This document shows, piece after piece, positions 142 to 60,659 of a stretch of 64,000 bases of DNA. Below the pieces are notes generated by a model. The model saw only the letters and a program-made list of their open reading frames with translations. It was not told the DNA's origin and ran no database searches. Made by a program: the position numbers and the translations under genes. The DNA is taken from positions 62,001-126,000 of IMG/VR virus record IMGVR_UViG_3300042359_000853; one strand, given 5' to 3'. How positions within the stretch are numbered: position 1 is the stretch's first letter; each line of letters begins with the position of its first letter.

Positions 142-447
142 TTATTGAATCTCTTCGATTCTCAAATTTTTATCATCAATAAATATGTCGTAGTATGGTT
201 TATCGACTCTCAAATCGTGGTGCTTAGCTCCCCACTCAACAAGTTGTTTCTTTGTTAGATCATACCAATCTATCCCAGATCTACTGCCTCTAGCAGTCCA
301 ATATACAATCCTATTACCTTTATCATACAGATCGTTTATTTTATTTATGTTTTCTCTAATTGGAGTCGACTGTTCATAAACTCTTGGATTATCAGGGGTT
401 ATACATATTGTTTCATCAATATCGACATAGATTACTTTTTTATTCAT
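142..447 (-). CDS. HAD-superfamily phosphatase (capsule-biosynthesis phosphatase-like)
   Basis: HAD motifs YVDIDETIC, YWTARG, KP.YD.FIDDK. Confidence 0.8.
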   Translation of the reverse strand: MNKKVIYVDIDETICITPDNPRVYEQSTPIRENINKINDLYDKGNRIVYWTARGSRSGIDWYDLTKKQLVEWGAKHHDLRVDKPYYDIFIDDKNLRIEEIQ

Positions 448-450
448 ATT

Positions 451-1065
451 TCAACTAATTAATTTTTTATTAGAGCACATAATATTACAATATCTCCAGT
501 CATCACCAAAGTTTTCCAATTTTTCTTCACCATTTATATGAAAATCATCGAAACCATGATTTACTAGAATTGATGCCAATTCTTCAAGATTGCTTCCTGC
601 TTCTCTCAGACCAATTCCATATTCAAATTGAACATACTTCGTTTTGGATAAAAAATCTCCAAAACCTCTTAAAACTTTGGTTTCAAATCCCTCAACATCT
701 ATTTTTATAAAATCAATGTATTCAATACCTTTCTCGAGGCAGTAATTCAAACCCGTTCTAACTTCGGTTTCTGTTTGAGTTACAATATCTGACATATTTT
801 CTCTTCTATAAAGAGAACCCTCTTTGTAGAGTTTGAGTATACATGGTTTATCGGATAGGGCAAAATTATTCAAGTAATATTCTTTGTTCTTGATATTTCT
901 TCTCATACTGTTAGAATGAGAGATATAGTTAGGTTCAAAGTAGTGGCAAATTATATCTGGTTCTTCAAAGAAAATTGAATCATCTGCCACACCGATATCA
1001 AAAACAATTTTGCAATTATTTTTAATTTTTTGGAAATAAATTTTTTCGTAATCCTCTATTGTCAT
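451..1065 (-). CDS. FkbM-family SAM-dependent methyltransferase
   Basis: VFDIG, FEPN, NFALSD, IDFIKIDVEGFE..VL.G, QFEY motifs. Confidence 0.85.
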   Translation of the reverse strand: MTIEDYEKIYFQKIKNNCKIVFDIGVADDSIFFEEPDIICHYFEPNYISHSNSMRRNIKNKEYYLNNFALSDKPCILKLYKEGSLYRRENMSDIVTQTETEVRTGLNYCLEKGIEYIDFIKIDVEGFETKVLRGFGDFLSKTKYVQFEYGIGLREAGSNLEELASILVNHGFDDFHINGEEKLENFGDDWRYCNIMCSNKKLIS

Positions 1066-1079
1066 AATTTTATCTAATT

Positions 1080-1754
1080 TTATTTTTGTAAGATTTGTCT
1101 GTATTTCTCTTTTTCATCATTTAAGATTTTCTTAACTTCATCTTTGCCTAAAAAACATATATTTTTGTGATCTTCTTTGAATATCATAGCTGATTTTTCA
1201 CAAATTTCTGTTTTCACTAAACATTCCTCAATTGTTTTACCCCAAGTTATTATGCCGTGATTCTTGAGTAAGATTATTTTGGGATCTGTATTATGTATCT
1301 CAACAAACTTATCAAATTCCTTTTCTATTGCTTGACATAATTCATCACCTGGGTGAAAATAATTAACCAAACATGATTTCATTCCATTGAAAACAACTTG
1401 ATCAGGAAAAAATCTATAGTTAGCAAAAGTAGAAGATAAGTTTCTACATAAAATTCGCATAGTATGTGATGGGTGTGTATGTGCCACAAAGTTACATCCT
1501 GTTTTTCTCAAAATTAGAGAATGAAAAGGTGCCTCCATACTAGCTCTTAATTCTGAGTTTCTTGGAATGCAATCCCAGGAGCATTCTACTAAATCTTTAT
1601 CTTTTAATGTCTCCATCCTTCTACCAGAAGCTTTAATCAAAAAAGTTTCATCAGAAAATCTTGCCGATACATTGCCCTCATATCCTACAACAAACGGGCT
1701 ATGACTCTTTGCTAATTTCAAAAGACTAGTTTTAATATTATTTTTATCTACCAT
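1080..1754 (-). CDS. class II aldolase/adducin-family protein
   Basis: EGNVSAR, IKASG, SME.PFH, HTHP, LLKNHG metal-binding motifs. Confidence 0.88.
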   Translation of the reverse strand: MVDKNNIKTSLLKLAKSHSPFVVGYEGNVSARFSDETFLIKASGRRMETLKDKDLVECSWDCIPRNSELRASMEAPFHSLILRKTGCNFVAHTHPSHTMRILCRNLSSTFANYRFFPDQVVFNGMKSCLVNYFHPGDELCQAIEKEFDKFVEIHNTDPKIILLKNHGIITWGKTIEECLVKTEICEKSAMIFKEDHKNICFLGKDEVKKILNDEKEKYRQILQK

Positions 1755-2506
1755 CTTGATAATCTGAAACTTCTATTTGAATTAAATTTAAAATTTTGAC
1801 AAATTCTTAAATATTCATCCTGTAAATAACCTTCTAGACCATTATTACTGAGTGGCAGAAGACCACCTCCGTGTGTTATATGTATAAACTGATAGAAAGG
1901 AAGACATTTGAAATATCCACATTCAACCGGAGTAGGGCAATACATTTTGTATATGGAGAATTTTTGTGAATATACTTGGGTCTCGAATTTTTCGATTGTT
2001 CTATAATTCTCGTTTGGGAAATTTGACATAATATCCATCAACGTCTCAAACTTCCAGATAGAGGGATTCACGTTATAAATAGCATGATTTGGATCATTCT
2101 GTTTTGTAAGATAAAAATCTAAATCATTCCACTTCAGATGATAATCTGATGAGTTCGAATGATAATATTGAAGATCAATTCGATCTAAATTATTATCTCT
2201 TGCAAAATCAAATAGTCCTTTTAACATAGTTACATCTTTAGATACGAGAATATCAATATCGTGAGTTAAAAGAATGTAATCTTCCTGGAATGATGTTTCT
2301 TTAAGGGATAGAATTCTAGAAGCATAGGGAAGTGAATCATCATAAAAAAGTATTTCTTTATAGCCCTCGGTAATATTTTGAGGCAAATTGCTAGTTTTGT
2401 TGATAAATAATTTTTTATCTGATATATCTCGAAGATAATGTGTCTGAATATTTAGAATATCTAAATATTCAGTATGTGAATAAATAATCCAATTCATATT
2501 ATGCAA
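1748..2506 (-). CDS. glycosyltransferase-like protein (GT-A fold); start may be ATG 2497
   Basis: HDID DxD-like motif, YNVNPSIW motif, cluster context. Confidence 0.55.
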   Translation of the reverse strand: MHNMNWIIYSHTEYLDILNIQTHYLRDISDKKLFINKTSNLPQNITEGYKEILFYDDSLPYASRILSLKETSFQEDYILLTHDIDILVSKDVTMLKGLFDFARDNNLDRIDLQYYHSNSSDYHLKWNDLDFYLTKQNDPNHAIYNVNPSIWKFETLMDIMSNFPNENYRTIEKFETQVYSQKFSIYKMYCPTPVECGYFKCLPFYQFIHITHGGGLLPLSNNGLEGYLQDEYLRICQNFKFNSNRSFRLSRW

Positions 2507-3953
2507 TCTTTTTTCCGAGGAAAAGAATTACAATCACTACGTAATCATAATAATTACCAAGATTGAATCTATCATCATCATTTATAGGGTAATATTGTAG
2601 AAAAGTTACCTTATTATGATTTTTATCCGAAGAATCAATTTTGAAAGGTATATTTCTAGCTGAAAAGTAGCTTATGATTTCTAGAAGAGTATATTTTTTG
2701 TGTATAAAAAGATTCAAGATCACATTCGGTAAAATTTCAGGATAGTTCAAATCAATCTGATCCTCAGTAGTAAAATTAATTATTAAATCCGATAAGTCTC
2801 TTTGTGGTAGAACATATTTGTAATAGTCATCTTTTCTAAGTGAGATCTGCTCAAGAACTTTTTCTTTAGTATATCCCCGTTCAAGAACATCTCTTTTGAT
2901 TTTCCAAAGTTGCTTCAATCTTGTATCAGTATCCACAAAAATTTTTAGATCATAAACCCCATCATTTCTACCTAAGAGACTATGTAGACCACAAACAATC
3001 AAGTTATCTGATGTTTCTATTTCTTGTTTTTCTGTAAATTTACCTGTTGAATGATCATAATTTACATGGTAAATACTTTTTCCGATTTTTAGATCAAAAA
3101 TATCATCACTCATTTTTGTAATATAGTTAGCTTCTGGATTGAGATGTGTGAATTTTTTCCAATTATCGTCGCCTCTCTCCCACTTATGATACCTATCACA
3201 TTCTAGCATAAATGAATTTGAAAAATAAGTTTTTAGAATATTTCCCAAAGTTGTTTTACCAGAACCAGAATCACCAGCAATAGCAAAAACATTACAGAGT
3301 GAAAGTATCACATTATACTCCATATCTACCAACTTTTTAGGCATGTTTGATGACATAAAATAGTTGAACAAAATAGTTTCTGGTGTGTATCCGTTTTTCT
3401 GGGTTAGAGAATCTAGATTATGATAAATATCAAAATATTTGTTCATGGATTCTCCATCACCAAAAGCAAAAATATCACAAAGATGGTCGTCACCTGAATT
3501 TTCTAATTTTGACTTATCAATTATACTCTTAGAAGGTATATACACTAAATTATTTTCTATGCTATCAGGAAAAACATCCTCTGATATAATATTCAAGTCG
3601 GGTCTGTATTTTATAATAAGATCATATTTGAATTTTATTTCATTAATTTTTCTTAATTCATTTAATTTATAATATTTTATCCAATGATTATAAAGATTGT
3701 TTTTCTTTTTATTTTTTGAAAAATAGTAGTTATCCTCATAGATGAGAGAAACGGGATTCAAGATTTCTTCGAGCCATTTCAAATCCTCCAACTCATGATT
3801 CAAATTGAAGTATTTATCTTCTGTAGATTCATTTTTTGTAATATGAATGTAAATATCAACTTTGTCAAATTTGTCTAAAATTTTAGTTTTTATATTCGGA
3901 ATATTTATTTTGAAACTTCTTAAATATCCAGAAATCAAAAGAGCTACTCTCAT
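2499..3953 (-). CDS. fusion of an N-terminal glycosyltransferase-like domain and a phosphoribulokinase/uridine kinase-like P-loop kinase
   Basis: N-part RVALLISGYLR...YDLIIKYRPDL...DIFAFG; C-part AGDSGSGKTT, DRYHKWER, HLNPEAN, YDHSTGKF, KIKRD..ERGY. Confidence 0.8.
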   Translation of the reverse strand: MRVALLISGYLRSFKINIPNIKTKILDKFDKVDIYIHITKNESTEDKYFNLNHELEDLKWLEEILNPVSLIYEDNYYFSKNKKKNNLYNHWIKYYKLNELRKINEIKFKYDLIIKYRPDLNIISEDVFPDSIENNLVYIPSKSIIDKSKLENSGDDHLCDIFAFGDGESMNKYFDIYHNLDSLTQKNGYTPETILFNYFMSSNMPKKLVDMEYNVILSLCNVFAIAGDSGSGKTTLGNILKTYFSNSFMLECDRYHKWERGDDNWKKFTHLNPEANYITKMSDDIFDLKIGKSIYHVNYDHSTGKFTEKQEIETSDNLIVCGLHSLLGRNDGVYDLKIFVDTDTRLKQLWKIKRDVLERGYTKEKVLEQISLRKDDYYKYVLPQRDLSDLIINFTTEDQIDLNYPEILPNVILNLFIHKKYTLLEIISYFSARNIPFKIDSSDKNHNKVTFLQYYPINDDDRFNLGNYYDYVVIVILFLGKKIA

Positions 3954-3969
3954 TTGTTGTAAGTTATTT

Positions 3970-4824
3970 TTATCTAAAATTATTTATTATTTTCCAATTG
4001 CTAAGCTCGATGGGTTCTAGTTTATGAAAATTAGAATTGTGTGCTAAAATTAGACCTCCAAAACGGTTAATAAGTGGATGTAGAAATATCGGTTTAGATT
4101 TGAACAAGCTATATTTAGCATCAAGCAAGTAACAAAAAGCCGCCCAAACAGAATCTATAAAATGTATTTCACTTGATTTTTCTAAAATTTTTATTGTGTG
4201 AAAAATATTATCGGCCAGTCCATGTAAATTGACATATTTTTTTGAATTATCAAAGTTATGTATTTGTAAAGGAACACCAAAATTACGGGTTGGATCTGAA
4301 TGTACTAGAATATAATTATCGGTGCCAATTTTGGAAATAAAATCGTTATAGACTTCTTCTTCTTTCTCTAAATCTCTTGTAATATTAAAGCAATTTATTT
4401 TTTCAACAAAATCTATATCATAATGTGTATATAAACCTTTGATTGGATGATCGGTCTGCCATAGTTTTGGATAAATGTCTTTGTATTTATCATCTGGTCT
4501 TCTATACCAATCAGACCAACCGTGGATAAGTAAATCATAATCTTCTTTATCCACACCGTTTTCTTGCCAGATATCATACAAACTTTTTTTACCAGTTTTC
4601 TCCAAATCGTGATCAGATTCAAGAATTTTTAAAATTTCGACATTTTCTAAATCCTTCAGTGCGAACTGAACATTCTCATACATTTTATCGATTACGGTAA
4701 CTTTTACGAGATCATATTTTTTAGCGTAGTATCCCGGTAGAGATAGTAGATTTATTGTATCAGTCCAAGCTTGATGTGAATATATTATACCTTTTTTCAT
4801 TGTATCTATTTTATTATTGTCCAA
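3970..4824 (-). CDS. glycosyltransferase-like protein (GT-B/GT9-like), paralog of 4806-5573
   Basis: HQAWTD, RDLEKE, YILVH, EIHFIDSVWA, shared with the neighbouring ORF. Confidence 0.55.
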   Translation of the reverse strand: MDNNKIDTMKKGIIYSHQAWTDTINLLSLPGYYAKKYDLVKVTVIDKMYENVQFALKDLENVEILKILESDHDLEKTGKKSLYDIWQENGVDKEDYDLLIHGWSDWYRRPDDKYKDIYPKLWQTDHPIKGLYTHYDIDFVEKINCFNITRDLEKEEEVYNDFISKIGTDNYILVHSDPTRNFGVPLQIHNFDNSKKYVNLHGLADNIFHTIKILEKSSEIHFIDSVWAAFCYLLDAKYSLFKSKPIFLHPLINRFGGLILAHNSNFHKLEPIELSNWKIINNFR

Positions 4825-5573
4825 TTTTCAGGATGAATTGGTTCAATAGTTTGATCTGTTTGATAATCTAATAAACCACCTTGTCTTAATTTGAATGGAT
4901 ATATAAATATAGGAATATCAGTAAATAATCTATATTTACAATCTAGATGATAAATTATTGAAGCCCAGACTGAATCAACTAAATGAATTTGTTCGGATTT
5001 CTGTAAAATTTTAATGAAACTAAAAAAATTTGTAGTAATCTTGTTCAAATTTATGCTCTTTTTATTATTGATTACGTGATTTGGAAGTTTTATTCCAGTA
5101 TCACCACCTGGTGTATGATCATCTTCGTGATACAGAATATAGTCACTCCTCTTAGATTCAATAAAATTTTGGTAAGTTGTATTCTCTAACTCTAAATCTC
5201 TTTTTAAAGAGAAGTATTCTATTTTAGCTCTAAAATCAATACCATATGACTGATAAAATTTTTTCACAAAGAAATCTGAACTCGAGTCAAATCTAAACCT
5301 GAATTGATCTGACCTGAATCGATCGTGTTGCCCATGAAAAAGAATATCATATCCAAGCTGGATATTAAAGTGGTAATTATCGAGATCTTTTTTATTTTGA
5401 TATATTGCCGAGACGTTATCAAATTGACTCAGATAGAAATCTATAAATGGTCTCGAATCCTCACGAATTAAAACATCTAAATGGGCGTATCTTTTTGAAT
5501 AATAACCCACTAAACCTAAGCAATTTACGATATCAGTCCAACCTTGATGTGTAAAAAAAATACCTCTCTTCAA
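4806..5573 (-). CDS. glycosyltransferase-like protein (GT-B/GT9-like), paralog of 3970-4824
   Basis: HQGWTD, RDLELE, YILYH, QIHLVDSVWA; TTG start. Confidence 0.55.
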   Translation of the reverse strand: MKRGIFFTHQGWTDIVNCLGLVGYYSKRYAHLDVLIREDSRPFIDFYLSQFDNVSAIYQNKKDLDNYHFNIQLGYDILFHGQHDRFRSDQFRFRFDSSSDFFVKKFYQSYGIDFRAKIEYFSLKRDLELENTTYQNFIESKRSDYILYHEDDHTPGGDTGIKLPNHVINNKKSINLNKITTNFFSFIKILQKSEQIHLVDSVWASIIYHLDCKYRLFTDIPIFIYPFKLRQGGLLDYQTDQTIEPIHPENWTIIK

Positions 5574-6790
5574 ATTAAATTATTGTAAAATTTTATAAAA
5601 TCCTCCAAATCAAAACTCCACTCAGAATTTAGACCTTCGTCTAAGGGTGTAGCATCCTCTTTGAGAACTTTTATTTCTTCAAATGTATCATCGTTGTTCC
5701 ATCCGGATATAGGTGATTTCGAAAAATTAACAACTAAATATTTTTTTTGGACTTCTTTAATCTCACCAATTCTATTACCCCACTTTATTCTCATGTATCT
5801 TTTCCATATGTTAGATTCAGTATTTAAAGAATTCAAGAAATAGTTTGTAGTTCCACCAGAAAAACTAAATATAAATCTAGAATTTATTGATAAAAAATGT
5901 GGAGAACATATGCATATACTTTTACATTCAGAGTTAGCAAACAAAAGGTTACATAATCCACCACCGATGGCGCCTATAACCATTTCAGATCCCATCATCA
6001 TTCCTATTTTGTCGTTGGTAGAAAGTTTTTCGGTAAAAACTTCAGTAAATCCTTCACTTTCTAAAAATTTAACTAGTTCATCCTCAATTATAAGTTTTCT
6101 TCTCTGAGTATAATTTGTTCCAATATTAGAGTAGTCACCGTGAATCCAGCTTCTTCTGGATATGTAAATTTTTTTTGGATAAGAATTTATATCAACTAGA
6201 TTACTAACAACATTTTTTATTTGTTCATATAATTTGAAAATTTCTTGTCTGGGTGGTAAGTTAGAATTGTGTCCATGTGTATAGGAATCTGAAATGTAAA
6301 TTTTTTTGTATAATATACCTCGATCTAGAGAAACTAAATTTTCTTTCTCAATTTCAAGAATTTTCAAAAACTCCCAAAAAAAGGGATAAAAATCACGGCT
6401 ACCGGGAAAACTAACTAATATCTTTTCAACTAAGTTTTCTTTTTTGAGTTGCTTATAAGTTATTAAATAGGGTAGTGTGTCGTAAACAAAATGGTAGTAA
6501 TTATCAGAGTTATAAACAAAATAAAAAACAGGTTCTTCAAATGTCGATATTAATCTAACCTCAGTAGAGATCTCAATAGGTTGTTCCGAATAATCACCAA
6601 GTGACATAACTTTCTCGAAATAAGGATTATATAAATTATCACCAGACCCAAGAATAATACCTGGATAAATACTTGTATCACTAGCTACGAATACATCTTC
6701 TAATAGATAGGCATCTATTTTTCTCCCATTTTCGTCTGTATCAAAAATAGGCATTCTATTTTTGTGGTTTTCTAGTGTTTGTATATTCAT
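5570..6790 (-). CDS. GT61 (DUF563)-family glycosyltransferase
   Basis: NYYHFVYDTLP, KIYISRR, RR.L..E.EL...L...GF..V..E.LS, VIGAIGGGLCNLLF. Confidence 0.8.
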   Translation of the reverse strand: MNIQTLENHKNRMPIFDTDENGRKIDAYLLEDVFVASDTSIYPGIILGSGDNLYNPYFEKVMSLGDYSEQPIEISTEVRLISTFEEPVFYFVYNSDNYYHFVYDTLPYLITYKQLKKENLVEKILVSFPGSRDFYPFFWEFLKILEIEKENLVSLDRGILYKKIYISDSYTHGHNSNLPPRQEIFKLYEQIKNVVSNLVDINSYPKKIYISRRSWIHGDYSNIGTNYTQRRKLIIEDELVKFLESEGFTEVFTEKLSTNDKIGMMMGSEMVIGAIGGGLCNLLFANSECKSICICSPHFLSINSRFIFSFSGGTTNYFLNSLNTESNIWKRYMRIKWGNRIGEIKEVQKKYLVVNFSKSPISGWNNDDTFEEIKVLKEDATPLDEGLNSEWSFDLEDFIKFYNNLI

Positions 6791-6792
6791 GT

Positions 6793-7458
6793 TTAGTATA
6801 AAGTCGAGTTTACTCTATTTAATATACTCTGTGGTATTGGTTGGTGTGGTGCGGCAGAGACCTGGGAATCCCATTTATATTTACACATAATTTTATCTAG
6901 AACGAGTTGTGTTTTTGCTCTGGTTGATGCCTCGGCTATAAAAACAGCGTCTTCTCCCCAACTTATATTTTCAAAGGATATTTGTTTAATAAAATCAGTT
7001 CGCCAAGCACACCACTGCCAAGGCGGTCTATTACACGGCACAGGATTTCCAGAGGTATCTTTTTGAAGCTGATCGAATGGAATAACTTTGTTGTGCTCTA
7101 AATTAGTTCTGACTAACCATTTTTTTCCATCCACTGTCGCTTCTTGATTGTAACAAATTACATCAACGTCGAGATCCGTGGTTATACTATTTCTGAGTGT
7201 TTCTATGAAATCATCTACTACATCATCGTCATCATCAATAACACAAGTATATTGGCCTTGTGCAAGAGAAAATAAAAGATTTTTTTTTCTACCAATAGAC
7301 ATGACTTTATTGTCCATTAAACTGATGACTTCAATATCTTTTGAATCACCTATCTGATCCAGTAATTTTTTATAGAATGGGCTTAGATAGTTATTCATTC
7401 TTTCTGGAATACTTGGTATTCCAATTGTGAGTTTAATGGTTTGTGCTGAATTCATCAT
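6793..7458 (-). CDS. GT2-like glycosyltransferase
   Basis: LTIGIPSIPER, SIG.K.N.L...AQGQY.C.IDDDD, WGED. Confidence 0.8.
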   Translation of the reverse strand: MMNSAQTIKLTIGIPSIPERMNNYLSPFYKKLLDQIGDSKDIEVISLMDNKVMSIGRKKNLLFSLAQGQYTCVIDDDDDVVDDFIETLRNSITTDLDVDVICYNQEATVDGKKWLVRTNLEHNKVIPFDQLQKDTSGNPVPCNRPPWQWCAWRTDFIKQISFENISWGEDAVFIAEASTRAKTQLVLDKIMCKYKWDSQVSAAPHQPIPQSILNRVNSTLY

Positions 7459-8158
7459 AAATCTTCAAATTTATATTTTCTTTTTTTAAGAAATCTTGTA
7501 GAAAAACTTTGCCGTAGTAATTTACATCAAGAATACTACCGTCTCCCCAGTAAGCTTGGCCCACAAAGTGTTCGTCACTTCTTGGACCAGACGAACTTGG
7601 GAAAGGCCTTTTTTCGAAAAACTCATCATGAACCAATGATTCATTTTTGACTAGTGGGTATATTACACTACCAAGAAAGTCTTGGTCTATACCGTGTCTG
7701 TTATCTTTAGGAAACGTCTCAATCAATTTATCTATTTGAGTAAGTATTCCGGATTTAGCACCCCACATACCACCCAGTATAGGAACTGAATGATATCTAT
7801 GATCTCTCATAATATGAAATTGTTCTCTAGAATTTATCCATTCATCTACCGCCAATTTTTCCCTCAATAAAAGTCTGCTATCAACATCACGACTGATCAT
7901 TACTTCTACTTGAGGATCAGACGCAGCTAAAAATCTCCAAAACATACCAGTCCAATCACAAACCTGCGAAATTTCTATGAGTTCTACGTTTTTTCTGATT
8001 GATAGATCTTCTTTTAATCTCGTTGGTGTATTGTGACCTAAATAGTAACGACATATCCAGTCGGGGTAGTAAATTTGTGCTAAATCCGCATTTTGTAGTG
8101 CACCACCGGTATATCGATAGTTATTACCCCACAAACTAAAACATATTACCTTTTTCAC
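7433..8158 (-). CDS. putative glycosyltransferase (GT-A type seen in large DNA viruses)
   Basis: FSLWG..Y..GA..NA, MFWRF, SRDVDSR, HIMRDH..H..PILGGMWG, DQDFL; GTG start. Confidence 0.65.
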   Translation of the reverse strand: MKKVICFSLWGNNYRYTGGALQNADLAQIYYPDWICRYYLGHNTPTRLKEDLSIRKNVELIEISQVCDWTGMFWRFLAASDPQVEVMISRDVDSRLLLREKLAVDEWINSREQFHIMRDHRYHSVPILGGMWGAKSGILTQIDKLIETFPKDNRHGIDQDFLGSVIYPLVKNESLVHDEFFEKRPFPSSSGPRSDEHFVGQAYWGDGSILDVNYYGKVFLQDFLKKENINLKIYDEFSTNH

Positions 8159-8943
8159 TTTATACTATCAAACTTTTTGAAATTGACCTTATTTCTGAAG
8201 AAAAAACTTTCATAGGGATACTGCCTTTCATCAGAAAGAACTCTACGATGTGGCCTACCGTATAGTCCTGAAATTGTAGCTGAAGGATCAAAAGTGTATT
8301 TAGTAATAGTGAACTCTTGGTTAAACTTTGGTTTCTCAGCGTATCCTATTTCAGAATTATTAATTATCATGGTAGGATCTTTTTGACCAGTTTGATGAAC
8401 ATTCACGATAATTGGAAGATTCAGTCCTGGTGGGTAGTTCCCGAACTTATCGATATATCTCCAAACGAAGTCGCCATCTTCTTCACCATGTAGTAGGAAC
8501 CTTTCATCAAAATAATTCATATCATCTAAAAGTTTTTTAGTAATAACAAAATGACTGAATGAGTTATTGATAGTAAAACATTCCTGACCTGGGTTGGATG
8601 ATATAACACCATTCAAGATTTCTACAAAGTTTTTGCCTTCGTCAAAAAGTAGATCATCATTGAGAATAAGATTATATTCGGTAACAGAGTTAATAACGAG
8701 AGTGTTCCACAACTTAGCCAGAGCTCTAAACTCTTGATGAAAAATGGGAAATATGTTGTTATATTCTAAACATAGTTTAAGAACTCCTTTTCTATATTCT
8801 TCACTAAAAGGAGTTTCTATTTCTCCATTAATTGCTAAGTTTATGATTATATCCGGATCACATCTCTTGAGATATTTTATCATTCTAGTGAGTGATTCGA
8901 GACGCCTTTCGAATGTTGTTATTCCTATACTAAAGTTTGTCAT
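8155..8943 (-). CDS. GT2-like glycosyltransferase
   Basis: SIGITTF, LILNDD, YFDERF..GEEDGD. Confidence 0.75.
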   Translation of the reverse strand: MTNFSIGITTFERRLESLTRMIKYLKRCDPDIIINLAINGEIETPFSEEYRKGVLKLCLEYNNIFPIFHQEFRALAKLWNTLVINSVTEYNLILNDDLLFDEGKNFVEILNGVISSNPGQECFTINNSFSHFVITKKLLDDMNYFDERFLLHGEEDGDFVWRYIDKFGNYPPGLNLPIIVNVHQTGQKDPTMIINNSEIGYAEKPKFNQEFTITKYTFDPSATISGLYGRPHRRVLSDERQYPYESFFFRNKVNFKKFDSIK

Positions 8944-9782
8944 TCAAAAATTCGGTAGAGAAACTCTCTAATGGTTTCTATTTTATTCGCGACGGGTGGT
9001 TCGTTATTTACAAAAGGTCTTTCACTAAGAACTTCGAAATACTTTTCCCGGTTACGATCTAGTTCTATAATATATTCTACAGCAGATGAAAAGTTTGGAA
9101 AATTTCTTACATCAATAAAAGATTTCGGGTTAAACTCTTTATTAATATCTGTGTTTCCAAAATAAATCGGAATAGTATGTGATGATAGAGCTTGTGGAAG
9201 TTTTTCTGTAGTATAGTGCTCGTTATAACCTCTATGTGCGTCGTTCTCAAAACAAATATTAAACTTGTAATGTCTGAGAAACTCAAGCTTATCTCCTACG
9301 AGTCTTCCCAGATTGTTCATAAATCTACCACCCGAATCAACCGTCTTGTATTTTGAGAGAAGATTGAAAAACTCGTTTCTCGGACCAGATGCGCCGTTGC
9401 TTACTACAAAAGAACAAAACTTTCTATCAAAAAGAGATTCTTGTGGGTCTGGTCTTTGTGAAAGTTCATAATAACCAGGATACAAAAGATAGTGTGGTAG
9501 TCTATAGTTTCTCGGATCTTCTGAATAATCAAAAGAAAAAGCCCAATCACATCCCCTTAGAGGATCTACATCTCGAAAAATTGGTGATATATTCTCACCG
9601 GTATAAAATATTTTTTTGCAACTATATCGGGTATGGTTACTACCAAAAACCGAATAAAACAAAAAATCTGGATTTGGTGAAATTTCTACCGAAAAACCTT
9701 CACGAAGAAGATTAGTAAAGTAGTTATCGGATTTATCAAACCCAGGCCAAAAATCTATAAAATCTATTTTTAATGACCTCAT
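8940..9782 (-). CDS. GT10-family alpha-1,3-fucosyltransferase-like protein
   Basis: DFWPGF, YTGEN, RLP.Y, FCSFVVSN, VDSGG, YKFNICFEN, YTTEKL, IPIYFG. Confidence 0.88.
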   Translation of the reverse strand: MRSLKIDFIDFWPGFDKSDNYFTNLLREGFSVEISPNPDFLFYSVFGSNHTRYSCKKIFYTGENISPIFRDVDPLRGCDWAFSFDYSEDPRNYRLPHYLLYPGYYELSQRPDPQESLFDRKFCSFVVSNGASGPRNEFFNLLSKYKTVDSGGRFMNNLGRLVGDKLEFLRHYKFNICFENDAHRGYNEHYTTEKLPQALSSHTIPIYFGNTDINKEFNPKSFIDVRNFPNFSSAVEYIIELDRNREKYFEVLSERPFVNNEPPVANKIETIREFLYRIFE

Positions 9783-14488: not shown

Positions 14489-14875
14489 ATGAATATAAAA
14501 GCAGATTATACACTACCAGTTACCTTAACAGACGAAAGTTTTGATAGTTTTATTGAAACGGGTGTTCGTGTGGTTTATGTAAAAGCTTCTTGGTGTGGTC
14601 CTTGTCGTATGATGGCTCCTGTCATCGATGATCTAGCCAGAGAGTTTGGTGGAGAGGATAAAGTTATATTTGGTAAAGTTGATGCCGATGATTGTGTGGA
14701 GACTTGCCTGAGTTTGAAGGTTAGGAGTGTTCCTACTATTGTTATCTATAAAGATGGAGAATTGAAAGATAAGAAGACAGGAGTGGTTGCAAAACCTGTT
14801 CTGATTGAAATGTTTAAGAGTTTGATGAATGATAACTCTACGGGTGATATTGATACCGGTTCTGAAGATTTTTAA
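14489..14875 (+). CDS. trxA: thioredoxin
   Basis: WCGPC active site, VRSVPT cis-Pro loop. Confidence 0.92.
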   Translation: MNIKADYTLPVTLTDESFDSFIETGVRVVYVKASWCGPCRMMAPVIDDLAREFGGEDKVIFGKVDADDCVETCLSLKVRSVPTIVIYKDGELKDKKTGVVAKPVLIEMFKSLMNDNSTGDIDTGSEDF

Positions 14876-14893
14876 ATCATTTACCCAAAAAAA

Positions 14894-20359: not shown

Positions 20360-20414
20360 TTTTACCTTCGTTTATATATAAATAGTGAAGGTTGTCATCT
20401 AGGAACGATATCAA

Positions 20415-23603: not shown

Positions 23604-23695
23604 TAAGGAGACTTTTTTTTGTATATATATTTTATAGTGTTGTCTGGGAATTCTCTATAATTTTGCTAGATTACTCAAAAAAAAATATTAAATAA

Positions 23696-50583: not shown

Positions 50584-50584
50584 A

Positions 50585-54421: not shown

Positions 54422-54454
54422 ATGTACTATATATAATTATTTTTTTTTAGATAT

Positions 54455-57400
54455 TTATCCATAAACAATGTGAAGAATATATTGTGTGAAGGATCCCAGT
54501 TGTTGAACTCGGAGTGTATAGTCACCGGATGTTATTGGGTAACTAGATATTAAAAGGTTTTGACCGATTTGTGAAGTTCCAAAATGTTGTTGAGTAATCA
54601 TCAAACCAGGGTTATCACCACTAGACCAGGTAGCACCACTCTGAAGACCCATCCAAGCGACATTGTCTAGTGATACATAGCTATAAAGAACAATTGAAGT
54701 GATTTCTTTGCTACTTTCTACTTCAAATTTGAAGTAATTATTTGTATTTGGTCCAACTTCTGATTCAACAACACAAGTTCCATCAACAAGTGTTAATTGA
54801 GTTGGTAGAGTGGCATCTTCTGATGGACTACCGGAATAAATATAATTGTAAGTAATTTCAAATGTTGGTGTAGGAGTAGGAGTAGGTGTTGAAGTTGATG
54901 TGTAGGTAATAGTAGGTGTTATAGATGGTGTCGGTGTCGGTGTAGAGGTTTGTGATGGTGTGGATGTTACCGTTGATGTGATTGATGGTGTTGGTGTTGT
55001 TGTAGGCGTCTCTGTTGGTGTCGTTGTAGGTGTTATTGTATTTGTTGGTGTTGTGGTCGGTGTCACACTACTTGATGGTGTGATAGTGGGTGTTATGGAT
55101 GGTGTTGGTGTTTGTGTAGAAGTTTGTGTGGGTGTCGGAGTGGGTGTTAGTGTAGAACTTGGTGTAGGTGTAAGAGTTCGAGTTGGAGTTATGGATGGTG
55201 TTATAGATGGTGTTGGTGTTTGTGTTCTTGTTAGTGTTGGTGTTTGTGTATTTGTAGGGGTAATTGATGGTGTAATCGACGGTGTTGGTGTTTGCGAAGG
55301 GGTTTGGGTTGGTGTTTGTGTTTGTGAAGGTGTTTGTGTAGGTGTAGGTGTTATAGTCGTAGTAGAAGTTGTTGTTGTCGTTGGAATACAAAAATCACCC
55401 CACAATGGTAATTTATCATCGGTTAAATTTATAGCATTGGTATTGAAGTTCGTTGGTGTTTTCGTAATATTTTGAACACACCAAGAGGAAATATCATTCG
55501 AAAAAGATTTTGCGGATTCGAACATATAATTCATATTCGTCACACTTGAAACCGTCCAACCGCTGATGTTATTATTGAAGTTTTCGGCCCATCTGAACAT
55601 GGATTCCATATTTGTAGCTATAGTAGTATCCCAAGTAGATACGGTTCCATTGAAGTTTTTGGCGTAATAAAATAGACTTGAGAAATCTTCGATATTTGAA
55701 GTATTTAATTCTTCTAGGTTTTGATTATAATTGATACAGCCAGAAAATAATTCACTTACTGACGTTATAGTTGAAAGTGTCCAACTCTCGAAGTTTTTTA
55801 CTAGTGTTAAAGATTCACAACCTTTAAAAAATCTATCCAGTGTAGTAAGATTTGATAAATCTGGTGTATCAGAGATATTTTGTAGATCCATATTTATACA
55901 ACCCTCAAAACTACCCGGTTCGTTGAGTAGTTGAAGATTTCCCCACTTCAAAACTTCTCGAATTTGAGTTTTTGAACCGCCACTTTCAAAAGACCAACCA
56001 CTTATTGTTCCAACAATAATTATATCATAAATACCCGGAGTATTGTATGTGTGATATCTAGAATAATAGCTAGAAACAGAGGAAGTTTTTCCATCTCCCC
56101 AAATAGCTAAAAAAGAATAAGTACCCCAGCTCAGTAAAGGTAATTCAATTGATAAAGAATCAGAATTAACTCTCCATCTAGTTACAAAAGACCCAGGTAA
56201 AGAAGTTGTAGTGCTAGTCGTAGTAGTAGTTGTTGGGTTAGACAGTGTAGTTGTAGATGTCGTTGTTGTATGTGGTGTTTCGGAGGTGGAGCTTGTTATA
56301 CCTAGTTGAAAGAACTTTTTTGTTCCCAATTCTATATAGGAGCTACCGGCATTAGATTTACTCTGTATAAGTTCCATTTCTGAAAAAAGACCGAATCCAA
56401 CACTAGTTTCACCAAGCCAAGGTCTTATATTGAGTTGGTTTGCTATATCGTCTATTCTACAAGCTATACCCTCTACTAAACAAGAAGTAGGCACACTCGG
56501 ATCACAATTACCAGGACCACAATTACTACCACTACTATTTCTTGGTGGATAGCCTGAAGAATTACAACTTTCTGGCCCAATGATCTCATCACACGGGCTA
56601 GAACAAGAAAGTGTTGAATATCCAGCAAAGACAAGACCAATAATTTTTCTTGTTCCACTAAAATCCGCTATTAACGCAGAGCCTGAGTCACCCGGTGCTA
56701 TGGGAAATGGACACCAATTTACAGTATCTCTGAACGCTTTGAAAACTAATCCTCTTTCAAAATGACAGATAGACGATTGACCTTGTAGTTTAAAATTAAT
56801 ATCAAATTCCTCATCTATTCTAACAATTTTCAATTTCATACTACCTTCACCCTTGGCACCAGTTGTTCTACCAGATGAGAATAAATCACCCGAGCTAGAT
56901 GGTCCGTGTGTAGAAAGTAAATTGTCAATTTCACTAGATGTCGCAAAATCAAGTGCGTAGGTATGAGTTAAACCTATTTGAAGAAAAGATTGAGTTAAAC
57001 TCAAAGCTGACGAGTCAAGTGATAATACAGCAACATCTACTCTATTTTTAATAGTTCCTGTATCATTGTTGAGGTCACCATCCCAACACGAATTAGTTAT
57101 ACCCGGTGCATTTATACACGGGTGTATAGGTTGATATCTTTTAACACCACCAACATTACTGATCGTTCCATAGATATAATATCCCGAAGGTGCGGTCACA
57201 CCACTCCTGTCCCAAGGACTTGGTTGTGAGGTTGCATTTTTGAAAACATTATAAATTTCAGTTGCCGTGAGACCTAAATTAGTAACCACACCATCATTAT
57301 TTTTGTAAATGTTCAAAAATGCATCCTGAACTACAACATGGTTGTTTGTTATACCGACAAGTGTGTTATCCCAACCATCAATTGCAATAAAACCAAGTGT

Positions 57401-57787
57401 TCCAACAGAACTAGTCATCGAGGTTGTATTTGTTAAACTAGTCCCACCTTTGAGTGGTCTTATAGAACCTCGGTTCTCGGGCGTTGTTAGTTGCCACTCG
57501 TAAAAAGAAGGATCGTTCGTGTAACATGGGTTTGTTAGTGGAAAGGGATTCACTCTTTCAATAACATCCGTTTTAATTTCAAAATCATTTATAAATATTA
57601 TAGCTGGGATTATTTGATTTTCAGTAAGTAGTTCCAAGGGTTTCTTCTGAGAAACACTATAGATAATTGATAACTCTTCAGTTGGCTTTTGATTTATTGT
57701 TTTGAAACCAATACCAATCGAATTTACCCCATTAGGTCTAGTTTTTTTAGCCTCTAAGAAGGCTCTTCTCAAAAGATTGTATGACAT
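54455..57787 (-). CDS. multidomain protein: trypsin-like serine protease (Nal1-like), PKD-like domain, BspA/DUF285 repeats, Thr/Pro tract, C-terminal beta domain
   Basis: GTLG, TNNHVV (His), DVAV (Asp), SGRTTG, GDSGS (Ser); WGDG...HTY.TPGIY; W.T....NM..MF..A..FN..IS.W. Confidence 0.8.
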   Translation of the reverse strand: MSYNLLRRAFLEAKKTRPNGVNSIGIGFKTINQKPTEELSIIYSVSQKKPLELLTENQIIPAIIFINDFEIKTDVIERVNPFPLTNPCYTNDPSFYEWQLTTPENRGSIRPLKGGTSLTNTTSMTSSVGTLGFIAIDGWDNTLVGITNNHVVVQDAFLNIYKNNDGVVTNLGLTATEIYNVFKNATSQPSPWDRSGVTAPSGYYIYGTISNVGGVKRYQPIHPCINAPGITNSCWDGDLNNDTGTIKNRVDVAVLSLDSSALSLTQSFLQIGLTHTYALDFATSSEIDNLLSTHGPSSSGDLFSSGRTTGAKGEGSMKLKIVRIDEEFDINFKLQGQSSICHFERGLVFKAFRDTVNWCPFPIAPGDSGSALIADFSGTRKIIGLVFAGYSTLSCSSPCDEIIGPESCNSSGYPPRNSSGSNCGPGNCDPSVPTSCLVEGIACRIDDIANQLNIRPWLGETSVGFGLFSEMELIQSKSNAGSSYIELGTKKFFQLGITSSTSETPHTTTTSTTTLSNPTTTTTTSTTTSLPGSFVTRWRVNSDSLSIELPLLSWGTYSFLAIWGDGKTSSVSSYYSRYHTYNTPGIYDIIIVGTISGWSFESGGSKTQIREVLKWGNLQLLNEPGSFEGCINMDLQNISDTPDLSNLTTLDRFFKGCESLTLVKNFESWTLSTITSVSELFSGCINYNQNLEELNTSNIEDFSSLFYYAKNFNGTVSTWDTTIATNMESMFRWAENFNNNISGWTVSSVTNMNYMFESAKSFSNDISSWCVQNITKTPTNFNTNAINLTDDKLPLWGDFCIPTTTTTSTTTITPTPTQTPSQTQTPTQTPSQTPTPSITPSITPTNTQTPTLTRTQTPTPSITPSITPTRTLTPTPSSTLTPTPTPTQTSTQTPTPSITPTITPSSSVTPTTTPTNTITPTTTPTETPTTTPTPSITSTVTSTPSQTSTPTPTPSITPTITYTSTSTPTPTPTPTFEITYNYIYSGSPSEDATLPTQLTLVDGTCVVESEVGPNTNNYFKFEVESSKEITSIVLYSYVSLDNVAWMGLQSGATWSSGDNPGLMITQQHFGTSQIGQNLLISSYPITSGDYTLRVQQLGSFTQYILHIVYG
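54860..55385 (-). repeat. coding Thr/Pro/Ser tandem repeat (TPTQTPS/ITPS units)
   Basis: Low-complexity GGTGT-rich tract on the plus strand. Confidence 0.9.
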
Positions 57788-57830
57788 ATGAAATATATAT
57801 TCAATATTTCATTCTATCCAAACTATTCTA

Positions 57831-60659
57831 TTACGGAAATGTTGGGAAATTAGGGGGTATTGAATTTTTATTGGATCCTGGTAGATTTATACCTGGAAAT
57901 TTAATCCAACCATCATTGACAGATTCCGATAATGTTTGACCTGTAAAATCAGCGATGTTCGTAGCTTGGTAAAAAGTTGCCGTAGAAGAGGTCATAAAAT
58001 CTAGTCTTGCAGAACTTATAGCAGCAAATGTAAAATTCAGAATTTCAGCTGAACCAAAATTAGCACCGGATGTATTTTGCCAGGCAAATCTTGAAAAACT
58101 ACCACTGACTGCTAATCGACCATCTGTTATTAGAGAATTTTGTGTAACTGATGCTGTGTAAAAAACAAGTTTGTCGTGATTAAAAACTATAGAAAATGAA
58201 CCGACACCATAGAAACCAGTCGCTACAACCCGAACAGAAAAAGATCCAGTGCTCTGTGTTGAACGATTCATAGTAATTTGTGGTAAACTAAGACCCAAAA
58301 TAGTTGCTGGATCTCTATTTGTTTCACAAGGTCTATAATTTACTATATCACCAGATGTTAATGTAACTTTATAGGTTTTGCAGTTACAACAAGGGGGTGC
58401 TGTTGGTGTGAAGTTGTTGTTTGATGGAACTGCTGTTTTATCACTACAAGTTGCTGTTGAAAAAGTAATACTCAGTGAATCAATCAACGGATCTGGCATT
58501 GAGACTGGTGTGTTAAACCCTCTTGACTGATATGGTTGGTATCGGTTGTCTGAAACAATACAACTACAACTTCCTATATTAGAAAAAGTAAAAATACCAA
58601 GACCTATCGAACCAATTGTTGGATCATCAGGGAATACTGTTGATCCATAGTAATCTCTTGATATACAGATTTCAGCTGAGGCAGTCCCACATAATACTGG
58701 AGTTGAAATAGAGAAAGCAGGATCACCTGAGTGGTAAGATATAGTCGCTACACAAGGTGAAGTTATCGGACCCGAAGCTTCTATAAACTCCAATTTTGAA
58801 TTCAAACAATTTACATATTTAAAAGTAGTAGCAGTATTACTAATTAGGGAAAATGTTCTACATGTTCTGACCTGTATGTTCAAGACCGATGAGTGATAAG
58901 ACGGTGGTTGATATCCGGCTTGGTTGAATACCGGATCACAACAATGAACATAATTTAGTGGGGTAAAAGTTCCGACTGCACCAAGTGGTCTAGCCCTTAC
59001 ACTTCTACATCTCTCACACGCACAAATACTGGATGTATTCCCTACGTAAAGATAATCGTATTTGATACTATTTCCTAAGCTATCACATCCTTCATAGGCA
59101 ATATTTGTAAAATTTGGACCAGACGCACCAATAACAGTCGGTCTACAATTTGGGCAAGGTGCTATAGTTGTTGTTGAAGTAGGACAAATAGTATAATTAT
59201 AACACGAACAAGTTCCACCACTACATCCCGATCTAATGTAGTGATTTACACCCCCTAACTGAGTTTCGTCAGTAGTTAATGGGGAATTTTGCCAAGAACT
59301 AAGACCATTATCCCAATAAGATATTGTAGGGCTCGTAAAGCTTGGATCACCGATCGGTTTATCAGTAACACCACAACCACAAATAGAATAGATATGTGTT
59401 TTACGACCAAATGGCACTGCGCCACTTTGTGGTATAGGTGCCCACCATGGTGATGGCACTGGTAATCCAGAAAATGTTATACCAGCAGTTACTGGCCACA
59501 TCGTTTTGGTGAGGTAATAACCTGGAGCTTGCCACCCACCATCTGGTTCATAACAAGATACATACTCCACCATAACGGGTCTTTTATCATTTGACTTAAT
59601 CTCTTCACCTAATTCAATTGCAAAACTACGACATACAGAACAATCTGAAGTTCTCTGATAACAGGTATTACCTGGTGTTGGAATTTGACCTGGTGTAGTT
59701 TGAACACCATTTATACTCGGATTTCCGGATATAACCTCTACACTATTTGAGCAAGCACAAAAAGCAATTGCTTCACTATCATAGAAATAGTAAAATCCAA
59801 AGTTCGGAAACCCACCGTTTTGAATACTTTGTGTGCAGTCTGTCCATCTTAATGAGTCTCCTGAATTGCCCTCAACTTCGTATGCGTTGCAAGTAAATTG
59901 ACCACAATTACAATTATTTATAGTTGGTGGTCCTTGTGGAAAACTTGTTGTAGTGGATGTTGTTGTTGTTGTACAGGGATTTATGCCTGAGATAGACTGT
60001 GCACAGGTATTACAATCTATTTGAAATCCTGATGTGAATGTGGGGTATCTTGGAGCTTGGTAAGGAACTGTATTTATAAGTCTGTAACAGTGATTATCGG
60101 CACCACGATAGACTCTTCCAGGAAAAGGATTATATTGTGCAATATTTATATTTGAAATAGTTGAGGTGAACGGTCTCTCTATACATCCACACAGACGTAA
60201 AGCTCGCCAACTTTGAGTAAATGGTGCTAATGTAGTTGTGGTTGATGTTGATGTAGTAGTTCTGAAAGGTTCTCCACAATCACAAGGACTACCTGGTTGG
60301 CTGAAAGTTCCAAAATTAGTCCAACTACCATTTTCGAGTCTAGGAGCTGTAGCACTACAAATAAAAGCTACTTCCCCTGGTTGATATTGAAGACTATGAG
60401 TAAATGAACTAGGTTGGCCACCAGGAACCGGCCTATAGACCAAACACTGCTCAATAGCCACTCGTGTATTTACAGAATTTGCAACAAATGTATATAAACT
60501 ACAACTAGCCGCATTTACACTACTTCTATAGGGTGGATTATTTGTTTGAACATTAAATGTTGGTGGTCCAACACAAGAAGCGCAGATTGGCGTTTCACAA
60601 GCTGCAAAATAAAAGTCACCAGTTCTAGTGGCTATAAAAGAATAAGTTATACTAATCAT
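57831..60659 (-). CDS. Cys-rich repeat protein with poly-Thr linkers and a C-terminal cohesin-like domain
   Basis: About 7 C-x2-[YF]...[YW]-x2-C...C modules; FSVRV...F.GVGSFSIVF.HDKL.F....FAW.....ILNFTF. Confidence 0.65.
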   Translation of the reverse strand: MISITYSFIATRTGDFYFAACETPICASCVGPPTFNVQTNNPPYRSSVNAASCSLYTFVANSVNTRVAIEQCLVYRPVPGGQPSSFTHSLQYQPGEVAFICSATAPRLENGSWTNFGTFSQPGSPCDCGEPFRTTTSTSTTTTLAPFTQSWRALRLCGCIERPFTSTISNINIAQYNPFPGRVYRGADNHCYRLINTVPYQAPRYPTFTSGFQIDCNTCAQSISGINPCTTTTTSTTTSFPQGPPTINNCNCGQFTCNAYEVEGNSGDSLRWTDCTQSIQNGGFPNFGFYYFYDSEAIAFCACSNSVEVISGNPSINGVQTTPGQIPTPGNTCYQRTSDCSVCRSFAIELGEEIKSNDKRPVMVEYVSCYEPDGGWQAPGYYLTKTMWPVTAGITFSGLPVPSPWWAPIPQSGAVPFGRKTHIYSICGCGVTDKPIGDPSFTSPTISYWDNGLSSWQNSPLTTDETQLGGVNHYIRSGCSGGTCSCYNYTICPTSTTTIAPCPNCRPTVIGASGPNFTNIAYEGCDSLGNSIKYDYLYVGNTSSICACERCRSVRARPLGAVGTFTPLNYVHCCDPVFNQAGYQPPSYHSSVLNIQVRTCRTFSLISNTATTFKYVNCLNSKLEFIEASGPITSPCVATISYHSGDPAFSISTPVLCGTASAEICISRDYYGSTVFPDDPTIGSIGLGIFTFSNIGSCSCIVSDNRYQPYQSRGFNTPVSMPDPLIDSLSITFSTATCSDKTAVPSNNNFTPTAPPCCNCKTYKVTLTSGDIVNYRPCETNRDPATILGLSLPQITMNRSTQSTGSFSVRVVATGFYGVGSFSIVFNHDKLVFYTASVTQNSLITDGRLAVSGSFSRFAWQNTSGANFGSAEILNFTFAAISSARLDFMTSSTATFYQATNIADFTGQTLSESVNDGWIKFPGINLPGSNKNSIPPNFPTFP

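Follow-up and report, generated by a model that had tools for sequence, protein, structure and literature searches.

Large T4-like phages of aquatic origin can carry extended clusters of glycosyltransferase (GT) genes. The cyanophages S-SCSM2R, S-SCSM1 and P-SSM2 encode at least 10 GTs, including GT10, GT11 and GT2, together with sugar-nucleotide enzymes, and the passages quoted from PMC12801897 read large cyanophage clusters as serving synthesis or modification of the host cell wall, the target being unproven. Virion glycosylation in mycobacteriophages was described by Freeman et al. 2023, as cited in PMC12619734. Here we analyze a window of 64,000 nt (positions 62,001 to 126,000 of the IMG/VR virus record IMGVR_UViG_3300042359_000853), in which an island of GT and sugar-modifying genes accompanies several large proteins with Thr/Pro or poly-Thr tracts. 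An earlier note had joined the two into a mucin-like coat, with the phage glycosylating its own fibres. We tentatively prefer another reading, of which we are slightly more doubtful than convinced: these would be two real but evolutionarily independent features of a huge T4-like phage, a host-directed glycan island and a set of modular Thr/Pro-linker proteins.

The locus shares with the cyanophage clusters the large set of GT and sugar-nucleotide genes, but hosts and gene sets differ, and the cassette of GT61, GT9-like, kinase, HAD-like and double nucleotidyltransferase genes described below is not among the genes quoted from PMC12801897. Mycobacteriophages and giant viruses likewise encode soluble GTs able to act on their own proteins in the cytoplasm; there the virion glycans have been demonstrated, whereas here they would be hypothetical, and the GT cassette is found also in phages without tracts. 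Secreted bacterial carbohydrate-active enzymes have Pro/Thr-rich interdomain linkers, and the tracts studied here are similar in forming long TPTx-type repeats between binding and catalytic modules; these repeats are length-variable and recently duplicated, and the proteins, unlike the bacterial ones, are phage-encoded and lack a signal peptide. Finally, the Tenacibaculum jumbo phages PTm1 and PTm5, whose capsids carry extra, fibre-like appendages (PMC13282480), have a gp264-like protein beside the neck genes (PTm5) and a protein matching the model of the gp265-like N-domain in BFVD (PTm1), though their relationship to this phage is remote (27% identity).

Distribution of glycosyltransferases and Thr-rich tracts among related phages

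The window corresponds, in reverse orientation, to positions 8402-72401 of a 95,110-bp viral contig (~33% G+C), which is 100.000% identical over its full length to positions 39292-134401 of the 227,583-bp IMG/VR contig G001. With the conserved phrog_29329 protein (Table 1) as the clade marker, the survey covered 48 contigs (12.2 Mb), 13 of them at least 90% complete. GT2 genes occur in 34 of the 48 contigs overall and are absent from just one of the 13 that are near-complete; TPTx tracts are found in G001 alone. The DNA pattern for TPTxTPTxTPT, with 38 copies in the 95-kb contig and none for the reversed control, proved too strict, as it misses linkers of the (T7)(A/V)AP type, present in two proteins of the relative G004; the uniqueness of the tracts suggested by this pattern (0 in 47 relatives) is thereby weakened. 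When the survey was repeated with a T7 pattern, nine of the 48 contigs, from ~5 lineages, were positive. The density of GT2 genes is 9.2 per Mb in these contigs vs 6.7 per Mb in the rest, and its correlation with poly-Thr is not significant (Spearman 0.15, p 0.33; 0.27, p 0.08 with one near-identical group collapsed).

Individual genomes show the same. LR745206, a 635-kb uncultured phage, has a sugar island in the same place and no Thr-rich run of the TTTTSTTT type among its 194,000 residues, and the complete phage G005, which carries the GT61 cassette, has no Thr/Pro-rich open reading frame (ORF), the maximum being 14 Thr+Pro per 40 residues. No poly-Thr run was found in eight other GT61-positive contigs, all of them fragments. 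Conversely, there are poly-Thr lineages without GT61 (the G036 group, G040 and G032), and GT2 is absent from seven of the 11 near-complete IMG/VR phages that carry Thr/Pro tracts. The Thr/Pro 4-repeat pattern as such occurs in at least 120 IMG/VR stretches, 68 of the 80 sampled ones lying in open frames of at least 200 amino acids (aa). The co-occurrence across relatives, which had been set beforehand as the test of a link between GTs and tracts, thus fails.

The mucin model, in which the soluble GTs of the island O-glycosylate the Thr/Pro and poly-Thr tracts of phage fibres in the cytoplasm and produce stiff stalks, is therefore rather unlikely in our view, although some of its premises hold. 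By a crude hydropathy scan, on which the statements here about transmembrane (TM) segments and missing export signals rest, no GT has a TM segment and no Thr/Pro protein has a hydrophobic N-terminus or TM segment, the earlier note having likewise described the latter proteins as free of signal peptides; since soluble GTs and proteins without export signals are combined in one genome, any modification of the tracts would be cytoplasmic. The peptide TTTTSTTT is found exactly in six proteins, encoded by different codons each time, and in close variants in others. Moreover, the GT9-like fold (see below) matches also TibC (Z 8.2), which we take to be a cytoplasmic protein heptosyltransferase. G001 and G004, the sole clade members in which GT61 was found, both have Thr-rich linkers (chance 36/1128), but this sharing is probably one evolutionary event. 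Mycobacteriophage GTs known to glycosylate virions, as cited in PMC12619734, provide a precedent. The model is opposed by GT61 in G005 and in the fragmentary contigs, by sugar islands without tracts throughout the clade, by poly-Thr lineages lacking GT61, by Thr/Pro proteins in complete phages lacking GT2, and by an upstream motif that is not late-specific.

Of the features of mucin-type proteins, dense Ser/Thr/Pro tandem repeats are present, while a secretory signal peptide is seen in none of the Thr/Pro proteins. No scanned ORF has a Pfam match to a known polypeptide-initiating O-glycosyltransferase family; GT61 membership by itself would not fix the acceptor, the comparison with EOGT and POMGNT2 included. 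Nothing relevant was found in the literature on mucin-like or Thr-rich phage virion proteins. Glycosylation of the tracts is, all in all, possible at a low probability. In a more specific scenario, which we consider quite improbable, the Thr-rich linkers of G001 and G004 would have been recruited as acceptors of GT61 and GT9-like enzymes, yielding glycosylated bottle-brush fibres with protease, lectin and LRR modules on display; the donor might then be of the NDP-heptose type and the cytoplasmic glycosylation TibC-like, with TTTTSTTT as the sequon.

The sugar island

The island consists of ~20 co-oriented genes, whose ends overlap or abut, and runs ~5 kb past window position 1; there is no TATATA motif inside it. 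From position 10474 downward, a GT2-like gene is followed by GT10, GT2_2, a GT8-like lead, GT2, GT61 and two GT9-like paralogs, and then by the PRK-like kinase fusion, the 252-aa ORF, class II aldolase, FkbM methyltransferase and HAD-like protein. Beyond the window there are a TylF-like methyltransferase, a GDPD-like protein (by eye), a third GT9-like paralog and a 524-aa double nucleotidyltransferase. Four GTs reach the Pfam cut-off: GT61, the GT10 FucT, and the GT2 genes at 6793-7458 and 25495-26310. Among the about 11 GT-like genes that had been counted in the window, eight are supported, but one (7433-8158) is a lead and two (1748-2506 and the N-terminal half of 2499-3953) are unassigned. 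The GT61 gene, confirmed by PF04577, was also recovered in the genome search, and the sugar-modifying enzymes ascribed to the window could be substantiated by Pfam and PHROG as FkbM methyltransferase, class II aldolase, PRK-like kinase and HAD-like protein, the sole PDB sequence relative of the latter being a 'capsule biosynthesis protein' (9iqw, E 5.7e-11). Several island ORFs have no match in Pfam, PHROG or NCBIfam. Further GTs are encoded elsewhere on G001, including a 1018-aa fusion of GT1 and FkbM methyltransferase, which forms a second glyco-locus with a 772-aa GT4/GT9-like protein (G001:28348-34654).

The position of the island is conserved among relatives. ClpB orthologs directly adjoin sugar genes in LR745206, G004, G045 and G016, with GT2 matches beside ClpB in the last two. 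In G004 (385 kb) the island is homologous and collinear, with 43-77% identity gene by gene. LR745206 has a different 15-kb sugar island between the orthologs of ClpB and of the other island flank, comprising, by Pfam, GT6, GT2, GT11, a deacetylase, a formyltransferase and a C-methyltransferase, and, by eye, epimerase-like ORFs. The sugar island is a clade-wide glycan module, fixed in position after the ClpB-like gene and variable in content.

Parts of the island are found outside the clade. G005, a 173-kb phage of another lineage, has nine island homologs including GT61, homologs of the latter with 41-50% identity occur in 13 other IMG/VR contigs, and copies of the kinase fusion, 46-62% identical, stand beside GT61 in ~10 other viral contigs. 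A portable seven-gene cassette (window 142-6790), composed of GT61, a GT9-like gene or the 252-aa ORF, the kinase fusion, class II aldolase, HAD-like, GDPD-like and double nucleotidyltransferase genes, is common to unrelated phages and to a contig binned as a giant-virus metagenome-assembled genome (L046, L047, L048, L049).

The AF2 model of the GT9-like protein (pLDDT 73.5) is nearest to WaaF, the E. coli heptosyltransferase II (Z 9.4, 213 of 255 residues aligned), followed by WaaC (Z 8.3-8.6) and TibC; all top matches are GT-B enzymes, the Foldseek E-values being merely 0.01-0.05. Since sequence profiles give no match for the pair (Pfam PF01075, NCBIfam, PHROG), we call these proteins GT9-like, that is, predicted to resemble GT9 in fold, and not GT9 members. 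The second half of the double nucleotidyltransferase resembles the heptose-1-phosphate guanylyltransferase of the 6-deoxy-manno-heptose pathway (HddC-like, E 1e-5). This half-domain, the capsule-protein-like HAD and the GT9-like fold together suggest, as a lead, an NDP-heptose-type donor route for the island. Along with the GT10 FucT, they also give the island a bacterial-glycan character.

The proposed acceptor of the island glycan

We propose that the core of the island might form a sugar-activation route, comprising the P-loop kinase fusion, the HAD-like protein, the double nucleotidyltransferase, the class II aldolase/epimerase and, by eye, the GDPD-like protein. The activated sugar would feed the soluble transferases (GT61, three GT9-like, GT10, several GT2 and the GT8-like protein), and, with two methyltransferases present, a methylated oligosaccharide would be built on the cytoplasmic side. 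Its acceptor would most likely be a lipid-linked or envelope glycoconjugate of the host, leading to remodelling of the infected cell surface, and less likely the phage proteins. The host acceptor is favoured, as it is on such glycans that the enzymes' nearest characterised relatives act, and as the cyanophage clusters are read that way.

As in bacterial O-antigen or capsule loci, sugar-nucleotide genes are accompanied by several GTs, while the initiating transferase, flippase or ABC exporter, and polymerase or ligase of such loci were not seen in the available 227 kb, ~39% of the genome, where the scan gave no multi-pass flippase- or polymerase-like protein (at least 8 TM segments). A host-envelope target thus needs host enzymes and export machinery. 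An ABC-exporter-like ORF (G001:151405-153216, 603 aa, at least 4 TM segments) is located 80 kb from the island, and ORFs with Bacteroidota-style signal peptides or a lipoprotein-like start (G001:5740-7314, 200546-206200) indicate that the phage also makes exported proteins.

A serious rival, though in itself unlikely, is that structural proteins of the phage, such as those of capsid, sheath or decoration, are glycosylated at sites outside the tracts, for which mycobacteriophages and chloroviruses provide parallels; the Thr/Pro tracts would then be unrelated linkers. It agrees with clade-wide islands lacking tracts, with uniformly soluble enzymes and no export or polymerase genes in 227 kb, with the fusion of a GT and an FkbM methyltransferase, and with the mycobacteriophage precedent cited in PMC12619734. 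However, no motif that could serve as acceptor was recognized, the enzymes have their nearest characterised relatives in lipopolysaccharide or capsule pathways, and the island content varies far more than the conserved structural proteins. As for the phage DNA, a set of at least 10 GTs including GT10, GT61 and GT9-like enzymes, together with sugar methyltransferases, is, to our knowledge, unlike known DNA-glycosylating sets. Hypermodification of DNA with sugars by these GTs is thus very improbable, even though phage GTs often act on DNA (PMC12619734).

The Thr/Pro-linker proteins

All five large proteins with Thr/Pro or poly-Thr tracts that had been pointed out in the window are present, but one of them, 15557-20359, is not a single ORF, being divided by an in-frame TAA (16385-16387) into parts of 1324 aa and 262 aa. 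The same TAA is present in G001. No contig from other runs spans it: the Logan contigs of three runs end at 16375, immediately ahead of the TAA, and the raw-read run examined contained none of this phage's reads. The TAA could be a genuine nonsense mutation, a site of read-through or an error in the assembly of the repeat, whose DNA consists of tandem units of 24-468 bp. The C-terminal motif of the downstream 262-aa ORF recurs (by eye) in the LamG_3 domains of a sixth tract protein (1309 aa), which begins beyond the window end at G001:131183 and has four LamG_3 stretches separated by tracts.

The tracts contain up to 31 Thr+Pro per 40 residues, and the repeats are partly recent: in protein 2 a 222-bp unit is duplicated at 95% identity. 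Four of the five proteins have no homologs in LR745206 or G004; protein 2, one of these, also has no Pfam match. Proteins 2, 3 and 5 show no Pfam, PHROG or NCBIfam family match, the TNF, cohesin and PPC matches being sub-threshold leads. Protein 5 has merely 5 relatives among 1.84 billion representatives, and most of its Cys residues and poly-Thr linkers recur by eye in P0121 and P0122. Its C-end is weakly cohesin-like, and P0122, a 1153-aa homolog, has extra C-terminal repeats, dockerin-like by eye; these sequences hint at a cohesin-dockerin-type assembly in the family of protein 5.

Protein 4 has a strong Pfam match to DUF285 (E 8e-37) and a profile match to rice NAL1 (E 6e-7), and its triad His150/Asp251/Ser368 is invariant across 51 homologs. 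In 60 of the 120 homologs listed, Thr/Pro linkers precede swapped C-terminal modules (DUF285, PEBP, DUF642, SprB, LamG, LRR). Residues 1-500 of 54455-57787 belong to a large uncharacterised family of NAL1-like trypsin-fold proteases with an intact triad and interchangeable binding modules.

Elsewhere, G001 encodes three more tract proteins and an SLT lytic transglycosylase whose linker contains TTTSTTT. The tracts, including that of the SLT enzyme, are always located between or beside globular modules, and they behave as interdomain linkers in lineage-specific modular binding or enzyme proteins. The family comprises at least nine modular proteins, in which Thr/Pro repeats of up to ~440 residues and the recurrent TTTTSTTT connect enzymes (a lytic transglycosylase and a trypsin-fold protease) or other modules, namely LamG lectin-type domains, DUF285 repeats, Cys-rich modules and a cohesin-like end. 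The tracts could act as extended spacers that hold the modules off the particle, as fibres or tethers, or could simply join the domains.

The gp265-like gene and a possible virion context

The N-domain of protein 1 aligns, with 30-44% identity and ending near residue 730, to the gene next to the phrog_29329 homolog in ~65 of 72 relative loci, none of these ~65 having a Thr/Pro tract. It matches PAU gp265 (E 7e-18), and protein 1 derives from this conserved protein, whose gene adjoins neck genes in PAU, PTm5 and MA9V-2. In relatives, the gp265-like gene ends in a conserved module of ~270 residues, which here is a separate ORF 28 kb from the N-terminal part. The gene has thus been split (gene fission), with the tract and the lectin-type domain taking the place of its end. 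The assumption that the gp265-like C-end is a hypervariable receptor tip was rejected, as 98% of relative pairs still align there. For the AF2 model of the N-domain (pLDDT 72), Foldseek gave no significant match in the PDB and the best Z in VIA-align wide was 3.5; a sequence profile search of the PDB gave no match, and BFVD only uncharacterised phage proteins.

Plausibly, the linker proteins are parts of the virion, for instance fibres. The alternative, that they are soluble multi-domain enzymes or binders, acting inside the cell or released at lysis, seems unlikely to us. The enzyme modules (SLT and the trypsin-fold protease with its intact triad), the absence of homologs of four of the five proteins from LR745206 and G004, and the lack of a structural match for the modelled N-domain are all compatible with it. 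On the other hand, the N-domain retained in protein 1 is that of a conserved neighbour of neck genes, and a 201-kb phage contig has a homolog of protein 4 amid its neck and sheath genes. Moreover, modules of the LamG, DUF285 and cohesin-like kinds serve in binding, and the genes are interleaved with large conserved ones.

Returning to the reading with a host-directed island and independent linker proteins, several observations do not agree with it easily. GT61 and Thr-rich linkers go together in G001 and G004. Neither an initiating phosphoglycosyltransferase nor a multi-pass protein resembling a flippase, polymerase or ligase was found in the 227 kb. The GTs are soluble throughout, and there is a GT1 and FkbM fusion, presumably resembling the capsid-glycosylating enzymes of chloroviruses. 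The maintenance of TTTTSTTT with varied codons hints at more than a passive spacer. Moreover, the particle location of the Thr/Pro proteins is itself a prediction from sequence, and the conserved N-domain of protein 1 is apparently without a solved structural relative.

The upstream TATATA motif

TATATA is found 6-21 nt before four of the five Thr/Pro genes and before the small ORF heading the fifth, so the motif described earlier upstream of four of them does exist, but its designation as late-type is unsupported. The motif precedes 88 of 232 ORFs, including those for a neck homolog, thioredoxin, DnaJ, SbcC, GT2 and, by N-terminal sequence, the small subunit of ribonucleotide reductase; the late-promoter interpretation was rejected because non-structural genes are among them. 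In G001, 121 of 208 copies (58%) fall into the non-coding 5%, typically 5-25 nt before start codons, and TATATA is a general promoter-like element. It is often common to divergent gene pairs (e.g. window 20360-20414, 23604-23700 and 57788-57830).

Phage identity, clade and host

The window belongs to a huge T4-like lake-water myophage related to uncultured phages of 635-735 kb. The phage origin is well founded: G001, ~39% complete by CheckV, encodes a T4-type portal (E 5e-50), a gp23-type capsid protein (E 2e-27), and sheath, neck and head-completion homologs. The window itself contains SbcC-like and UvsX-like genes and the 1062-aa phrog_29329 protein. The latter shows 51% identity to its counterpart in LR745206 and 36-51% to those in the records LR756500-04 (462-735 kb); remoter homologs are found in Lak phages, Tenacibaculum PTm5, Sphingomonas PAU (gp264) and Chryseobacterium MA9V, and IMG/VR contains 540 relatives, the closest with ~53% identity. 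Megablast against phages gave no match. At least 19 metagenome runs from lakes or fresh water, dating from 2020-2025, contain the phage sequence in full.

Membership in the clade around LR745206 and LR756501 is seen from conserved genes in conserved order, in which this phage resembles LR745206, LR756502, LR756501 (635-735 kb) and G004. Of 232 ORFs, 113 have homologs in LR745206 and 128 in G004. The gp264/gp265-like pair, ClpB, SbcC, UvsX, portal, capsid and the sugar island after ClpB are common to these phages, but the marker protein is only 32-54% identical between this phage and relatives of the LR745206 type, and here the gp265-like gene is remodelled and split.

The host is probably a Bacteroidota bacterium, given the hosts of cultured relatives and the Bacteroidota-style signal peptides (by eye) on other G001 ORFs. 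Stop codons of the 49 listed ORFs are TAA (31), TGA (9) and TAG (9), with no stop recoding in this phage. The Lak-A1 homolog (L010) of 20415-23603 has 18 stops under the standard bacterial code, as expected with stop reassignment there. A proteostasis and translation-rescue set, composed of ClpB-like, thioredoxin, SmpB, two DnaJ-like and, by N-terminal motif, Hsp70-like proteins, is also present (window 10471-12600, 14489-15343, 40443-41168; G001:12051-13928), the window containing no tmRNA gene.

Table 1. Features of the window discussed in the text.
Feature	Positions	Strand	Evidence and remarks
Sugar island, part in the window	142-10474	(-)	ORF layout; Pfam, PHROG, Atlas and fold results
Small HAD-like protein	142-447	(-)	phrog_1238, E 6.5e-27; DxD start motif by eye; 77% identical in G004
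FkbM-type methyltransferase	451-1065	(-)	Pfam PF05050, E 8e-9
Class II aldolase/epimerase-family protein	1080-1754	(-)	Pfam PF00596, E 2e-28; PDB relatives include L-fuculose-1-phosphate aldolase
Unassigned ORF, 252 aa	1748-2506	(-)	ORF only
Fusion of an N-domain without match and a PRK/uridine-kinase-like P-loop kinase	2499-3953	(-)	Pfam PF00485, E 5e-31; NCBIfam phosphoribulokinase subfamily
Two paralogous compact GT-B, GT9-like genes	3970-4824, 4806-5573	(-)	38% identical to each other; AF2 model
GT61-family glycosyltransferase	5570-6790	(-)	Pfam PF04577, 56 bits vs cut-off 27
GT2	6793-7458	(-)	Pfam, at or above cut-off
GT8/NDP-sugar-transferase-like, lead only	7433-8158	(-)	Atlas 0.92
GT2_2	8155-8943	(-)	Pfam, 26.2 vs 27.3 bits, just below cut-off
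GT10 fucosyltransferase-like	8940-9782	(-)	Pfam, at or above cut-off
GT2-like GT-A protein	9779-10474	(-)	Atlas 0.98; 191 features common with viral GT2 clusters
ClpB/ClpC-like double AAA+ protein	10471-12600	(-)	Pfam; marks the conserved island edge
LamG_3/ConA-like lectin-type domain ORF, 262 aa	15557-16345	(-)	Pfam PF13385, E 2.9e-4, below cut-off; downstream of the TAA
In-frame TAA inside the repeat of protein 1	16385-16387	(-)	Sister repeats have CAA or GAA at that place
Thr/Pro protein 1, 1324 aa	16385-20359	(-)	gp265-like N-domain (residues 1-730), Cys-containing region, ~440-aa Thr/Pro repeat
Conserved 1062-aa protein (phrog_29329, PAU gp264-like)	20415-23603	(-)	Adjoins neck/head-completion genes in PTm5 and MA9V-2
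Separate GT2 gene	25495-26310	(-)	Pfam, 28.1 bits; own TATATA motif
Thr/Pro protein 2, 705 aa	36049-38166	(-)	Three Thr/Pro tracts around two globular domains without match
Thr- and Cys-rich protein 3, 692 aa, 19 Cys	46400-48478	(-)	Carries TTTTSTTT; weak TNF/C1q-like match, E 0.008
Free-standing C-terminal module of gp265-like protein	48527-49456	(-)	34-46% identical to the C-ends of most of ~45 relatives, 27-32% in the remotest
Thr/Pro protein 4, 1110 aa	54455-57787	(-)	NAL1-like trypsin-fold protease, poly-Thr, DUF285 repeats, 170-aa tract, small C-domain
Cys-rich protein 5, 942 aa, 50 Cys	57831-60659	(-)	Short poly-Thr linkers; weak cohesin match, E 0.01

Significance

The present value of this analysis lies in a clear gene set and in a negative comparative result that narrows the mucin-coat hypothesis. 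Huge phages commonly hold many GTs of unassigned target; here, within a single clade, they are gathered in an island whose place next to a ClpB-like gene is fixed while its content varies, and the portable cassette of GT61, GT9-like, kinase, HAD-like and double nucleotidyltransferase genes spans unrelated phages and a giant-virus-binned contig. The lineage-specific burst of Thr/Pro-linked modular proteins provides candidate long tethers for host capture. Glycosylation of the tracts, if true, would add huge aquatic phages to the mycobacteriophages and giant viruses as cases of virion glycosylation, with a defined sequon.

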